This document shows positions 725 to 22,594 of a DNA stretch of 64,000 nt, piece by piece. Under the pieces are notes generated by a model that was not told the DNA's origin, did no database searches, and saw only the letters and a program-made list of their open reading frames with translations. Positions within the stretch are counted from its first letter, which is position 1. Each line of letters begins with the position of its first letter. Source of the DNA: Octopus sinensis (lineage: Eukaryota); contig NC_043006.1 of NCBI RefSeq assembly GCF_006345805.1, positions 52,328,001 to 52,392,000 on the forward strand, in the 5' to 3' direction. Position numbers and translations under genes: made by a program.

Positions 725-900
725 TTATTTTCTAATATTGCAGTCGGCTCTGTATTGCCAATCACACACTTTCAAGACTTTGTTGAAGTGCAAGTTTCCA
801 GGGCAATCCTTTCTGTAGGCAATACTCCAGTCACATTGATAAAAATGTCTGCAGCTTTGTGGATCAGGGAAAAGACCTGAAGGTTCAGGACATTTGAAGC
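725..900 (-). CDS. Gene A exon 9: chitin-binding type-2 (peritrophin-A/CBM14) domain and stop
   Basis: Acceptor ttttcactag. [58 protein letters not shown]. Six Cys spaced C-x12-C-x5-C-x9-C-x12-C-x7-C with the typical aromatic residues (FPD, FYQC, FN, CDW). Confidence 0.93.
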
Positions 901-21900: not shown

Positions 21901-22594
21901 ATTCACTCAGAAGGGTTCAGTCGATTCGGAACTATAGCAGAATATTTTCCCCCAACGTGCTGTAAAGTTAAACTGAAGTCGAAACTAAATGCTTGTGAAG
22001 CGGTCTTCGTAACCTCAAAGCTATACCTGCACTTCTTTATATATAATAAGCTAGTAGACAGATACAACGGAATCAACGAGGTCAGTTTCAGCCCATTGGT
22101 GAGGATATTTAAGCTCTGTGTATGTATGTATGTATGTATGTATGTATGTATGTATGTATGTGTATGTATGTATGTATGTATGTATGTATGTACGTACGTA
22201 TGTATGTAGATATTATGTATGTACGTATGTGTATGTATATATATATATGTGTGTGTATGAATACATACATATATAATTATATATATATATATATATATAT
22301 ATTATATATATATATATGTGTGTGTGTGTGTGTATTCATGCATACACATACATGCAATCTCATGCAAATATACATGCACGCATACATATGTATGCATAAA
22401 GACACACATGTGTTTAAAAATGAATTATACAGAATCTGTGTGTGTGTACGTGCGTGCGTGCGTGCGCGCGCAGATATATGTTTTCGTGCGTGCGCGCGAG
22501 TGTTCGGTTTGTAGGGAATCTAAAACAGAATACTTACAGAAATTAAGGTAGCAAGAAAAGCGCAGAGCAGGAATCTATCGGTTAATTGAAGCAT
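725..22594 (-). CDS. Gene A (9 coding exons, 498 aa): secreted Delta-like protein, signal peptide + MNNL/C2 + DSL + 6 EGF + CBM14 chitin-binding domain, no TM
   Basis: join(22538-22594, 19963-20152 or 21430-21619, 11222-11304 or 13477-13559, 8867-9034, 7602-7746, 6165-6275, 5150-5269, 3121-3567, 725-900) = 1497 nt. Intron phases are mutually compatible (0,1,0,0,1,1,1,1), the frame is open to TAA at 725-727, and every junction is GT-AG except the exon 6 donor (GA in this copy, GT in the duplicate at 26229-26230). Confidence 0.88.
1633..1886. mobile_element. Old hAT (Charlie-like) MITE
   Basis: Imperfect TIRs tagtgtttctcaacc ... ggtgagaacgactg and a degenerate 8-bp flank (atttagat/atgacgat). 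Homologous copy at 56955-57198. Confidence 0.55.
2264..2470 (+). mobile_element. tRNA-derived SINE (cephalopod-type)
   Basis: tRNA-like head with B-box-like gagttcaaat, followed by the body tttcatcctttcggggtcgataaattaagcaccag. Homologous copy at about 57969-58175. Confidence 0.75.
3121..3567 (-). CDS. Gene A exon 8: four EGF-like repeats
   Basis: Acceptor tttttgaatctag, donor gtaagc, 447 nt, phase 1-1. Four 6-Cys EGF units (ISACLSAPC..., DKCRSVTC..., NQCTPNPC..., NCPSRPC...). Confidence 0.93.
4493..4723. mobile_element. Tc1/mariner (pogo/Tigger-type) MITE, 231 bp
   Basis: ta|cagtaatacctcgactatcgcg ... cgcgatatggcgagagattactg|ta, i.e. TIRs with a TA target duplication. Homologous copy at 60426-60656. 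Confidence 0.75.
5150..5269 (-). CDS. Gene A exon 7: calcium-binding-type EGF repeat
   Basis: Acceptor atttatcttag, donor gtaaga, 120 nt. [40 protein letters not shown]. Not in the ORF track. Confidence 0.9.
6165..6275 (-). CDS. Gene A exon 6: EGF repeat (donor reads GA in this copy)
   Basis: Acceptor gtttttcag. [37 protein letters not shown], 111 nt. It is followed by gaattt here, but by gtattt in the duplicate and gtatta in paralog B. Confidence 0.88.
7500..7590 (-). mobile_element. Decayed SINE body, antisense to the 2264 SINE, right after the DSL exon donor
   Basis: The reverse complement aligns at about 65% to the SINE body (tctttac..tgaattcaaat..gcc..ctttca). Also at about 27570-27660 and 62695-62790. 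Confidence 0.55.
7602..7746 (-). CDS. Gene A exon 5: DSL (Delta/Serrate/LAG-2) domain
   Basis: Acceptor ttatatttcag, donor gtacgt. [48 protein letters not shown] matches the DSL pattern C-x3-YYG-x2-C-x3-C...C-x3-G-x-K-x-C-x2-G(W/F)-x-G-x2-C. The ORF track shows the wrong frame here. Confidence 0.9.
8867..9034 (-). CDS. Gene A exon 4: C-terminal part of the MNNL/C2 domain leading into DSL
   Basis: Acceptor ctgttttcag, donor gtaagt, 168 nt, phase 0-0. [62 protein letters not shown]|SYC parallels the LxYxxRxxC entry into Delta DSL domains. Conserved in paralog B. Confidence 0.85.
10420..10558. repeat. (AAC)n(AAT)n microsatellite
   Basis: Directly visible. Length differs in the duplicate (about 30478-30618). 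Confidence 0.95.
11222..11304 (-). CDS. Gene A exon 3 (MNNL/C2 middle)
   Basis: Acceptor aattttag, donor gtaagt, 83 nt, phase 1-0. [28 protein letters not shown]; the NPI motif resembles Delta NPIRFPF. Confidence 0.85.
13477..13559 (-). CDS. Duplicate of exon 3 in a local tandem repeat
   Basis: Same 83-nt sequence with intact AG and GT as 11222-11304. Confidence 0.75.
15135..16625. repeat. ~1.5-kb degenerate (TG/TA/CG) alternating purine-pyrimidine tract
   Basis: Cryptic dinucleotide simplicity, and the source of the His/Thr- and Cys/Val-rich ORFs. Copy at about 33270-34760. Confidence 0.95.
16862..18870. repeat. ~0.99-kb intronic tandem duplication bounded by (TA)n
   Basis: agtaaattgatctgcgtaaaaagg starts at about 16882 and 17871. 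Also at about 34995-37015. Confidence 0.92.
19117..19330. repeat. 214-bp foldback inverted repeat (two ~104-bp arms, 6-nt loop)
   Basis: aacttataaatgagggc...gcacgctcct ttttgg aggagcgtgc...gccctcatttataagtt, with only a few mismatches. Copy at 37263-37476. Confidence 0.92.
19963..20152 (-). CDS. Gene A exon 2 (MNNL/C2 N-terminal half), proximal copy
   Basis: Acceptor atattttacag, donor gtaagt, 190 nt, phase 0-1. [63 protein letters not shown](G) aligns to the Notch-ligand N-terminus (F-x-N...L-x-NG-x-C...C...VC...C-x-YG...T-x-VLG). Confidence 0.87.
21029..21087 (-). pseudogene. ATG-less copy of exon 1 (possible linker exon)
   Basis: Homologous to exon 1 with about 7 nt deleted, including the ATG. 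The donor gtaagt is retained. Twin at 19562-19620, and at 39175-39233 and 37708-37766 in the duplicate segment. Confidence 0.75.
21107..21135 (-). promoter_or_regulatory. Candidate TATA box plus initiator upstream of the ATG-less exon-1 copy
   Basis: Minus strand TATAAATA at 21135-21128, with CTCATA about 28 nt downstream. The same motif is at 19668-19661. The ATG-bearing exon 1 has TATACATA at the homologous site (22651-22644). Confidence 0.45.
21430..21619 (-). CDS. Gene A exon 2, distal copy (K>E and S>T variants)
   Basis: 190 nt with intact splice sites. Reads FIEFEN...FGTQQC versus FIKFEN...FGSQQC in the proximal copy. Confidence 0.82.
22538..22594 (-). CDS. Gene A exon 1: start codon and signal peptide
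   Basis: ATG at 22594-22592, [19 protein letters not shown], donor gtaagt in phase 0. It continues PIVA/DYV in exon 2, giving a hydrophobic core and a plausible cleavage site after PIVA. Confidence 0.82.

Follow-up and report, generated by a model that had tools for sequence, protein, structure and literature searches.

Gene structure at the locus

The window, meaning the entire 64,000-nucleotide stretch of the Octopus sinensis genome that was analyzed, contained a gene referred to here as copy A, a second copy of its first six exons (A'), and part of a paralog (B), all encoded on the minus strand. Copy A runs from position 22594 to position 725, and its nine exons join in frame to give an open reading frame of 1497 nt (498 aa) encoding, in order, a signal peptide, a C2/MNNL domain, a DSL domain, six EGF repeats, and a CBM14 domain followed by the stop codon. 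All of the splice sites were canonical with the exception of the exon 6 donor, which was GA rather than GT. Without exon 6, the model was 100% identical to the O. sinensis RefSeq protein XP_036362567.1.

The start codon and a 19-aa signal peptide are encoded by exon 1 (22538..22594), which ends at the donor GTAAGT. The C2/MNNL domain is divided among three exons: exon 2 (19963..20152) encodes its first part, ending in TGVIG, exon 3 (13477..13559) continues it with a translation of 28 residues, and exon 4 (8867..9034) encodes its C-terminal part as far as the start of the DSL domain. The DSL domain itself is found in exon 5 (7602..7746; 43 residues), where the cysteine scaffold was kept and the Notch-binding face was replaced. 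EGF1 is encoded by exon 6 (6165..6275), which has an intact reading frame upstream of its GA donor, EGF2 by exon 7 (5150..5269), and four further EGF repeats by exon 8 (3121..3567), for which the RefSeq acceptor is at 3567 and an alternative AG is at 3558. The last exon, exon 9 (725..900), is in phase 1; it encodes the CBM14/peritrophin-A domain and includes the TAA stop codon at 727-725. Two AATAAA polyadenylation signals lie between 385 and 450 on the same strand, 277 and 337 nt past the stop codon, and both were also conserved downstream of paralog B.

Exons 2 and 3 each have a tandem copy, and both copies sit within introns. The copy of exon 2 (21431..21619), which encodes the substitutions K33E and S52T and has intact splice sites, acts as a mutually exclusive alternative exon, since RefSeq isoforms X4 and X6 use it. 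The copy of exon 3 (11222-11304) is identical to exon 3.

An earlier note on this DNA, made from the sequence alone, had described six EGF repeats. The reading frames of all six were intact, but a six-EGF form would require splicing at the GA donor, and exon 6 was absent from the annotated transcripts both in O. sinensis (RefSeq X5) and in the O. vulgaris ortholog, leaving five EGFs. The O. vulgaris ortholog has the same GA at this position, and its model likewise skips the exon. Because of this donor and the skipping of exon 6 in both annotations, the copy A mRNA probably carries five EGFs rather than six. Exon 6 is symmetric (111 nt), so that skipping it preserves the frame. The possibility that copy A is a pseudogene was rejected on the grounds that the skip is in frame, that O. 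vulgaris shares both the GA donor and the skip, and that the remainder of the gene is intact.

A' (25559..43604) consists of copy A exons 1-6 and their introns at 99.2-99.7% identity, and repeats positions 5492-25458 of the window. The ends of the repeat fall exactly at a gap of Ns (25459-25558). In O. vulgaris only one copy is present, and it runs collinearly through the junction of A and A'. For these two reasons A' was rejected as a real tandem duplicate; it is a false duplication produced in the O. sinensis assembly by contigs that overlap but were left unmerged.

Paralog B (55992..64000) has the same architecture as copy A, with its 5' exons lying past the end of the window. It consists of exon 4 (63756-63589), a DSL exon (62942-62799), two EGF exons (62003-61896 and 61203-61087), an exon encoding six EGFs (59498-58827), an 18-nt micro-exon near 57725-57708, and a CBM14 exon (56162-55992) followed by TAA at 55991-55989. 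The stretch between B and A' (approximately 43.6-56.0 kb) contained no long open reading frame suggestive of a transmembrane exon, a search in which short exons could be missed. Fragments of LINE elements (APE endonuclease and reverse transcriptase) were found in this stretch. In O. vulgaris, a convergent kinesin gene begins 1.4 kb past the stop codon of the copy A ortholog, which leaves no room for a transmembrane exon downstream.

RefSeq fuses several of the paralogs into one gene with chimeric B-to-A isoforms, and the automatic names given at the locus, such as 'jagged-1b-like' and 'neurogenic locus notch homolog', are misleading.

Domain architecture and predicted secretion

All of the expected domains in the spliced copy A protein were supported by Pfam: MNNL (PF07657; 30.6 bits, cut-off 22.5, E 2.8e-7), DSL (PF01414; 43.9 bits, cut-off 24.2, E 2.8e-11), six EGF stretches in the six-EGF model, and CBM_14 (PF01607; 46.9 bits, cut-off 22.1, E 3e-12), the last of which matched the full profile (1-53). 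The cysteines of the CBM14 domain, as read from the sequence, are spaced C-x12-C-x5-C-x9-C-x12-C-x7-C. Its relatives in the PDB were the chitin-binding domain of a chitinase (6g9c, 1e-12), tachycitin (3.6e-8), and the chitin-binding domain of chitotriosidase.

At the other end of the protein, residues 7-231 aligned to DLL1 (4xbm), Jagged-1 (4cbz), and DLL4 (5mvx), and the mature N-terminus aligned with residue 4 of the DLL1 crystal construct. An AlphaFold2 model built from a 12-sequence alignment had a mean pLDDT of 56.6, with values below 35 in the CBM14 region, and the head alone was used in a Foldseek search. The first matches to this predicted fold were DLL1, Jagged-1/2, DLL4, and fly Delta and Serrate. 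Sequence identity of the head to the canonical DSL ligands was 36% or less.

The signal peptide was predicted from the 19-aa hydrophobic leader. In Kyte-Doolittle analysis with 19-residue windows, this leader (2.1) was the only part of the copy A protein to exceed 1.6; the internal maximum was 1.25, and neither a transmembrane segment nor a hydrophobic GPI-type tail was found. The splicing, the Pfam matches, and the identity to XP_036362567.1 thus bear out the earlier description of a secreted, nine-exon, in-frame C2/MNNL-DSL-EGF-CBM14 protein, and the hydrophobicity values agree with its statement that a transmembrane segment is lacking.

Distribution and conservation of the gene family

Twelve complete family models were available from O. 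sinensis and O. vulgaris. All of them end in CBM14, with the stop codon directly after this domain, and none has an internal hydrophobic segment. The exon order, the terminal CBM14 exon, and the TAA codon were common to O. vulgaris, O. bimaculoides, and Argonauta hians, and the succession of DSL, EGFs, phase-1 CBM14 exon, and TAA was found in at least four diverged paralogs and orthologs from four species. This conservation of phase and stop codon in four octopods confirms that the CBM14 exon, as had been proposed, is a genuine terminal exon. The head and the CBM14 domain were joined in two independent annotations (RefSeq O. sinensis and O. vulgaris GCA_951406725.2). The annotations of O. bimaculoides and Argonauta divide the locus into two gene models, and an 893-aa Argonauta model extends, as judged by its coordinates, from the DSL exon through the stop codon past the CBM14 exon.

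In O. vulgaris about 10 gene models of the family, with consecutive numbers, stand in tandem and span at least 280 kb. The number of EGF repeats per family member ranges from 5 to about 13.

The modules of these proteins differed in how well they were conserved. Rough estimates of dN/dS were 0.09-0.21 for CBM14, at dS above 1, and 0.29-0.59 for the C2 exons, and amino acid identity to Argonauta was 72% for CBM14 and 43-47% for C2. CBM14 is thus the most constrained module and the C2-DSL head the fastest-evolving. As far as these rough estimates go, dN/dS was below 1 in all modules and there was no sign of diversifying selection. Because the head is under purifying selection (dN/dS 0.3-0.6), it is expected to have a partner, which may yet be Notch in some non-canonical contact.

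The taxonomic distribution of the family was determined by an exhaustive HMMER search, in which octopod proteins matched at E ≤ 1e-66, together with a 93-aa Argonauta fragment, and the next matches, at 1e-18, were cnidarian delta-like proteins. No close relative outside the octopods was found in this search, the library of which may under-represent decapodiforms, and the tandem family has so far been seen only in octopods. The named best matches from other animals were cnidarian and bivalve delta-like proteins with 28-36% identity. Not one of the best 150 matches outside the family contained a CBM14 domain, so that no other DSL protein with this domain was found, and no nematode proteins were present among the approximately 20 of these 150 matches that were named.

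Loss of the Notch-binding signature

The DSL domain aligned without gaps to those of Jagged-1, DLL1, DLL4, and Serrate, and the six-cysteine scaffold was kept. In Jagged-1 the Notch-binding face of this domain consists of F199, R201, R203, D205, and F207 (PMC3415683), and the F207A substitution alone reduces binding of Jagged-1 to Notch-1 to background (PMC3888931). At these five positions copy A has R, D, P, S, and Q. Across the family in three Octopus species the replacements were F199 to R, R201 to D, E, or Y, R203 to P, D205 to S or I, and F207 to Q, all of them non-conservative, and the Argonauta family member likewise lacks the Notch-binding motif. The G-H-Y motif was also changed, to T/V-R-F, in the octopod family, while in 107 other DSL domains G was found in 92, H in 90, and Y in 91 (approximately 85%).

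None of 15 family proteins contained a DOS motif after the DSL domain when searched with a regular expression for the published consensus (PMC2504490). This absence is only weakly informative because the same expression found the motif in just 5 of 123 other DSL proteins. DOS-type EGF1-2 occurs in Delta, DLL1, and Jagged, though some ligands lack it. The DSL ligands of Caenorhabditis elegans signal even though they lack DOS motifs (PMC3415683, PMC2504490). At the level of sequence, the replaced DSL face suggests that the head would no longer dock on Notch in the canonical manner.

Comparison with known proteins

The octopod proteins share the N-terminal order of C2/MNNL, DSL, and tandem EGFs with the canonical DSL ligands (Delta/DLL1/DLL4 and Serrate/Jagged). 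They differ from these ligands in having a C-terminal CBM14 domain where the ligands have a transmembrane and cytoplasmic region, in the replaced DSL face and G-H-Y motif, in the absence of DOS-type EGF1-2, and in being encoded in a tandem array with variable EGF number. The C. elegans DSL-1 type of ligand also has a signal peptide, DSL, and EGF, and like the octopod proteins lacks a membrane anchor and a DOS motif. However, DSL-1 is reported to have one EGF (PMC3415683), no matrix-binding module has been reported in it, and the octopod proteins differ further in their added chitin anchor and degenerate DSL face. The simplest explanation of the secreted state of the octopod proteins is that it arose independently, when the CBM14 terminal exon was gained.

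Peritrophins, chitinase chitin-binding domains, tachycitin, and the CBM14 proteins of mollusc shell matrix have in common with the octopod family secretion and the six-cysteine CBM14 domain. The octopod proteins have a single such domain, placed at the very C-terminal end of an ectodomain that resembles that of a Notch ligand. Among the CBM14-only matches, the nearest contained several CBM14 repeats without EGF or DSL. Secreted EGF rods are also found in the EGF-containing matrix and adhesive proteins of molluscs (fibropellin-like, adhesive plaque matrix protein 2-like, and EGF-rich shell-matrix proteins), which were common among the EGF-level matches but lack the C2-DSL head. The skeletal matrices of lophotrochozoans are enriched in EGF domains as well as in CBM14 domains (PMC13425148).

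A C2-DSL head and a terminal CBM14 in one polypeptide were not found outside the octopods in the protein library searched. The earlier note knew of no characterized protein with this architecture. This held for the literature searched (DSL with chitin-binding and Notch; octopus delta-like with chitin-binding), in which the C2-DSL-EGF-CBM14 arrangement was undescribed, and a survey of lophotrochozoan DSL proteins nowhere mentions chitin (PMC8166818), but the sequences themselves are already in RefSeq and UniProt under the automatic names 'jagged-1b-like', 'delta-like protein 1', and 'Delta-like protein'.

Possible functions

The best explanation, to which about an even chance is given from sequence evidence, is that this Delta/Jagged-derived family contributes structural or linker proteins to an apical matrix of chitin. 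The family would descend from a Notch ligand of the Delta/Jagged type that was duplicated in tandem, with a single CBM14 domain standing in for the transmembrane and cytoplasmic regions; as an evolutionary description, the earlier suggestion that a chitin anchor replaced the membrane anchor is fair. The fusion would then be plain exon shuffling, since the terminal exon is symmetric and, like the EGF exons, in phase 1. The protein, judged to be secreted by its signal peptide and the absence of a transmembrane segment, would be held on chitin fibrils by the C-terminal CBM14, as suggested by its relatedness to tachycitin and to the chitin-binding domains of chitinases and by the constraint on this module. 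The EGF rod may space the C2-DSL head off the chitin, and the head may bind cell membranes or other matrix partners instead of Notch. Notch ligands bind phospholipid through their C2 domains when Ca2+ is present. A tandem array with variable EGF number is behavior typical of matrix genes, and the loss of the Notch-contact residues makes a chitin-matrix protein more likely than a signaling ligand. A cross-linker of lipid and chitin, as raised in the earlier note, is a better fit than a Notch modulator, with both binding activities predicted from homology. Candidate sites are the octopod sucker lining, gut cuticle, beak, and radula. The chitinous lining of the suckers, which is shed and renewed, has been reported in octopods only (PMC3672162, PMC8688392), and is for that reason an attractive candidate, the matching taxonomic distributions being the whole basis of the link.

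The same proteins could instead be Notch ligands or modulators tethered to chitin, with the CBM14 anchor resisting pulling, or with the protein sequestering or antagonizing Notch on the apical side of cuticle-secreting epithelia. Immobilized ligand ectodomains are able to activate Notch in culture, and the canonical C2-DSL-EGF ectodomain order is whole and under purifying selection in the octopods. The secreted DSL-1 is functional in C. elegans, whose ligands lack DOS, and in annelids and brachiopods the chaetal regions where chitin forms have been linked to Notch/Hes activity, in work cited in one report (PMC6368272). However, five of the five DSL contact residues have been replaced non-conservatively where the change of F207 alone is enough to bring binding to background, G-H-Y has been lost though kept in most other DSL domains, DOS is absent, and a fastest-evolving head encoded in a variable tandem array is unlike core signaling ligands. 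The matrix-tethered Notch modulator proposed earlier is weakened by these replacements and is considered unlikely. Signaling from matrix to cell, in which the resistance of the cuticle to a chitin-anchored DSL ligand would unfold the Notch NRR, is distinctly improbable. If true, it would involve receptor contact through a re-evolved, non-canonical DSL/C2 surface, and the deposition, strain, or shedding of cuticle, such as that of the octopod sucker lining, would directly instruct renewal of the epithelium beneath it.

Humoral or mucosal pattern recognition would have CBM14 bind the chitin of fungi, parasites, or prey while the EGF and C2-DSL regions opsonize, agglutinate, or bind host cells. 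Secretion, lineage-specific tandem expansion, a fast-evolving head, and variable repeat number are all consistent with such a role, and the relatives of CBM14 include the antimicrobial tachycitin. Conservation that is highest in CBM14 and lowest in the head would be no less expected, though, of a protein that binds an unchanging polymer of the animal's own, and immune-type domains are absent; together with the rough dN/dS estimates below 1 in every module, which give no sign of diversifying selection, this leaves an immune function rather improbable. It is highly improbable that the architecture results from annotation error or decay, with the CBM14 exon belonging to a separate transcript or copy A being a pseudogene. 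The broken exon 6 donor, the RefSeq merging of paralogs into chimeric isoforms, and the division of the locus into two models in O. bimaculoides and Argonauta are all consistent with such an origin, but the frame survives the skipping of exon 6, the exon order recurs across the four species with CBM14 exon dN/dS of 0.1-0.2, and the junction of head and CBM14 in two independent annotations, along with the span of the 893-aa Argonauta model, argues against separate transcripts.

Implications

The locus appears to record the recruitment of a developmental signaling ligand to the matrix by one exon-shuffling step, followed by tandem expansion in one lineage. It also flags faults of annotation, in the form of misleading names, merged paralogs, and the falsely duplicated stretch of the O. 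sinensis assembly. Should the head still make contact with Notch, these proteins would be a natural test of whether a non-cellular anchor can supply the resistance to pulling on which Notch activation depends. If it does not, they would represent a clean neofunctionalization of the C2-DSL-EGF ectodomain and a candidate component of octopod-specific chitinous structures such as the renewed sucker lining, which may be of relevance to cephalopod biology and to bio-inspired adhesion.

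Structure of copy A

Judged from its sequence, the product of copy A is a DSL-family protein in which the membrane anchor has been exchanged for a putative chitin anchor. The exons, deduced from stop-to-stop frames and inspection of splice sites, all lie on the minus strand: e1 (22594-22538) supplies the ATG and signal peptide, the C2/MNNL region begins in e2 (20152-19963), continues in e3 (13559-13477) and ends in e4 (9034-8867), which reaches as far as DSL, and DSL (e5, 7746-7602), EGF1 (e6, 6275-6165), EGF2 (e7, 5269-5150), four EGFs (e8, 3567-3121) and CBM14 with the stop codon (e9, 900-725) follow. 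Joined, the nine exons form a 1497-nt open frame encoding 498 aa, with outer coordinates (725-22594) identical to those of the earlier note. Two AATAAA signals follow, 277 and 337 nt past the stop.

The domains previously called by eye were supported by Pfam: MNNL in the head at 30.6 bits (cut-off 22.5), DSL at E 2.8e-11, and CBM_14 at 46.9 bits (E 3e-12) with the profile covered in full. Residues 7-231, the head, align to DLL1, Jagged-1 and DLL4 sequences taken from crystal structures, and the best Foldseek matches of an AlphaFold model of moderate to low confidence (mean pLDDT 56.6) were C2-DSL-EGF structures (DLL1, Jagged-1/2, DLL4, fly Delta/Serrate). The closest solved relatives of the CBM14 domain were a chitinase chitin-binding domain, tachycitin, Der p 23 and the chitotriosidase ChBD. 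The sole hydrophobic stretch is the 19-aa leader from e1 (KD19 2.1). With internal values no higher than 1.25 and a hydrophilic C-terminus, the protein has no apparent TM segment, as had been noted, and no apparent GPI signal.

The number of EGFs is probably smaller than first described. Pfam found six EGF stretches in the six-EGF model. The donor of e6 (AAAG/GAATTT) is the sole exception to AG/GT junctions in the gene. The e6 open reading frame is unbroken, and the GA donor is shared by A' (the near-identical repeat of exons 1-6 beyond the N gap) and by the O. vulgaris orthologue; the equivalent donor is GT in paralogue B (the neighbouring gene of the same architecture), O. bimaculoides and Argonauta. 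Two annotated models, RefSeq X5 and CAI9727914.1 of O. vulgaris, leave e6 out; being 111 nt long, symmetric and of phase 1, the exon can be skipped without loss of the reading frame. Once e6 is removed, copy A matches RefSeq XP_036362567.1 ("protein jagged-1b-like isoform X5", UniProt A0A7E6F6J4) at 100% identity, a record that places head and CBM14 in one transcript model. Five EGFs are therefore likely.

Exon copies, assembly and neighbouring paralogue

Exons 2 and 3 each occur twice inside intronic tandem repeats with periods of 1467 bp (exon 2, 19963-20152 and 21431-21619) and 2255 bp (exon 3, 13477-13559 and 11222-11304). The second e2 copy differs by two residues (K33E and S52T), and splice sites are intact in both. 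RefSeq isoforms choose between them, X4/X6 taking the 21431-21619 copy, which suggests mutually exclusive exons; inclusion of both would shift the frame, as each is 190 nt.

On a larger scale, 5492-25458 is repeated at 25559-43604 (~18-20 kb, 99.2-99.7% identity), with the ends of the duplication exactly at the edges of a 100-N gap (25459-25558). O. vulgaris shows collinearity between the 10 kb upstream of e1 and the sequence that lies upstream of A' in the window, and its orthologous locus is a single collinear copy with no extra set of exons 1-6. Because of this collinearity and the coincidence with the gap, the O. sinensis assembly most likely contains a false duplication here, A' being a contig overlap that was left unmerged. 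Copy A and A' differ in the number of 1.5-2.3 kb intronic repeat units carrying exon 3. GC skew is strongly positive (~+0.3) in the large intron (14000-18000 and 32000-36000), along extended (TG/CA)-rich tracts of low complexity that resemble imperfect microsatellites; numerous spurious ORFs rich in Cys, Val, His and Thr arise from them on either strand.

Paralogue B (55992-64000+) looks complete, with canonical splice sites throughout, eight EGFs, and its own CBM14 exon and stop. Between its large EGF exon and the CBM14 exon lies an 18-nt phase-1 micro-exon (57708-57725, minus strand, VPDPQA/S, canonical AG/GT), which is used in the RefSeq 429-aa isoforms and has no alignable counterpart in copy A. 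These isoforms seem to be spliced within the repetitive EGF exon (CICP/LHFKGKYCE), which may be an alignment artefact. The RefSeq gene model fuses the adjacent paralogues and predicts B-to-A read-through: in chimeric isoforms X2/X3 (RefSeq proteins P0001/P0269), paralogue B exons 1-7 are spliced onto copy A e7-e9 (55992-64000 plus 725-5269). At least nine RefSeq isoforms are assigned to this one locus, under names from "jagged-1a-like" to "neurogenic locus notch homolog protein 1-like".

Between the two genes is a plus-strand non-LTR retrotransposon (LINE, ~43600-50500) with an APE-type endonuclease ORF (47047-48063, Exo_endo_phos, E 3e-17) and a reverse transcriptase ORF (48802-50457, RVT_1 and zf-RVT). 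It is GC-rich (up to 56% versus a background of 32-35%) and flanked by (TATC)n-like microsatellites at ~45600-45750 and 50790-51100. Positions 43500-45100 and 24900-25458 each hold an older fragment of this kind of element.

Conservation and distribution of the family

A diverged O. vulgaris paralogue (head 63% identical), O. bimaculoides and Argonauta hians share the exon order, with CBM14 on a phase-1 last exon and TAA after it, and CBM14 terminates 12 of the 12 complete family models from O. sinensis and O. vulgaris. The O. vulgaris copy A orthologue is 21.3 kb long. Only 1.4 kb separates its CBM14 stop from a convergent KIF1-like kinesin gene, too little for a TM exon further downstream; the CBM14 exon thus appears to be truly terminal. 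This kinesin gene also marks the end of the O. vulgaris tandem cluster, whose members were located as about ten consecutively numbered gene models (CAI9727905 to CAI9727914) over at least 280 kb. The copy A orthologue of O. vulgaris (in OX597822.1:60,045,009-60,086,337) has two EGF2-type exons ~3.5 kb apart (locus positions 23239-23355 and 26778-26897), against a single one in the O. sinensis window. CBM14 is the module under strongest constraint (dN/dS 0.09-0.21 at dS >1; 72% aa identity to Argonauta), and the two C2 exons are under the weakest (0.29-0.59; 43-47%).

When the C2+DSL head was run exhaustively with HMMER against 1.84 billion representative proteins, octopod proteins came back at E ≤1e-66, together with one 93-aa Argonauta fragment, and the next matches reached only 1e-18. 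Among about twenty matches that were named, most were cnidarian delta-like proteins and one was a bivalve Delta; CBM14 was in none of the 150 best matches outside the octopod family, a restriction that applies within the searched library, where squid and cuttlefish coverage is uncertain. In the first search, PF01414 and PF01607 occurred together in the Octopus proteins alone. The earlier note knew the architecture from no characterised protein; no paper uniting DSL and chitin binding with Notch or octopus was found in the searchable literature, and a survey of 138 lophotrochozoan DSL genes, including two Octopus species, does not mention chitin (PMC8166818), but RefSeq and UniProt already list the sequences themselves under automatically assigned names.

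Notch-ligand features and possible function

The DSL cysteine scaffold is whole and aligns without gaps to Jagged-1, DLL1, DLL4 and Serrate. The conserved Notch-binding face of the Jagged-1 DSL domain comprises F199, R201, R203, D205 and F207 (PMC3415683), and F207A by itself reduces Notch-1 binding to background (PMC3888931). From the ungapped alignment of Jagged-1 nkfCrprddffghyaC with the octopus sequence, these positions are R, D, P, S and Q. G-H-Y is kept in 92, 90 and 91 of 107 non-octopod DSL domains of the same loop length, whereas T/V-R-F takes its place in the octopod family, and Argonauta has lost the motif too. Unlike canonical Notch ligands, the family keeps the scaffold without the contact residues. 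The DOS motif of Delta/Jagged EGF1-2 (consensus of PMC2504490) is also absent from the octopod proteins, which is weak evidence. In C. elegans, DSL ligands that are secreted and lack DOS motifs do signal (PMC3415683, PMC2504490). That precedent, and the purifying selection still acting on the head, favor the Notch modulator proposed in the earlier note, yet the loss of the DSL contact residues makes it the less probable reading; the other part of that proposal, a chitin anchor in place of the TM anchor, fits the architecture.

The predicted protein is thus secreted and joins a C2-DSL-EGF head to a CBM14 tail; it belongs to an octopod tandem family in which CBM14 is the most conserved module and the canonical DSL contacts are lost. 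The tail would anchor the protein to chitin, and the EGF rod would display a head whose partner now differs from Notch in its canonical mode. Membranes are a plausible partner, given that phospholipid is bound with Ca2+ by the C2 domain in Jagged-1, DLL1 and Serrate (PMC3888931); another matrix protein is a further possibility. The chitinous sucker lining, which is shed and renewed, is reported in octopods only (PMC3672162, PMC8688392) and parallels the family distribution, which is only a correlation. A tail fixed to chitin and a head without the canonical Notch mode would point to a chitin-matrix or linker protein.
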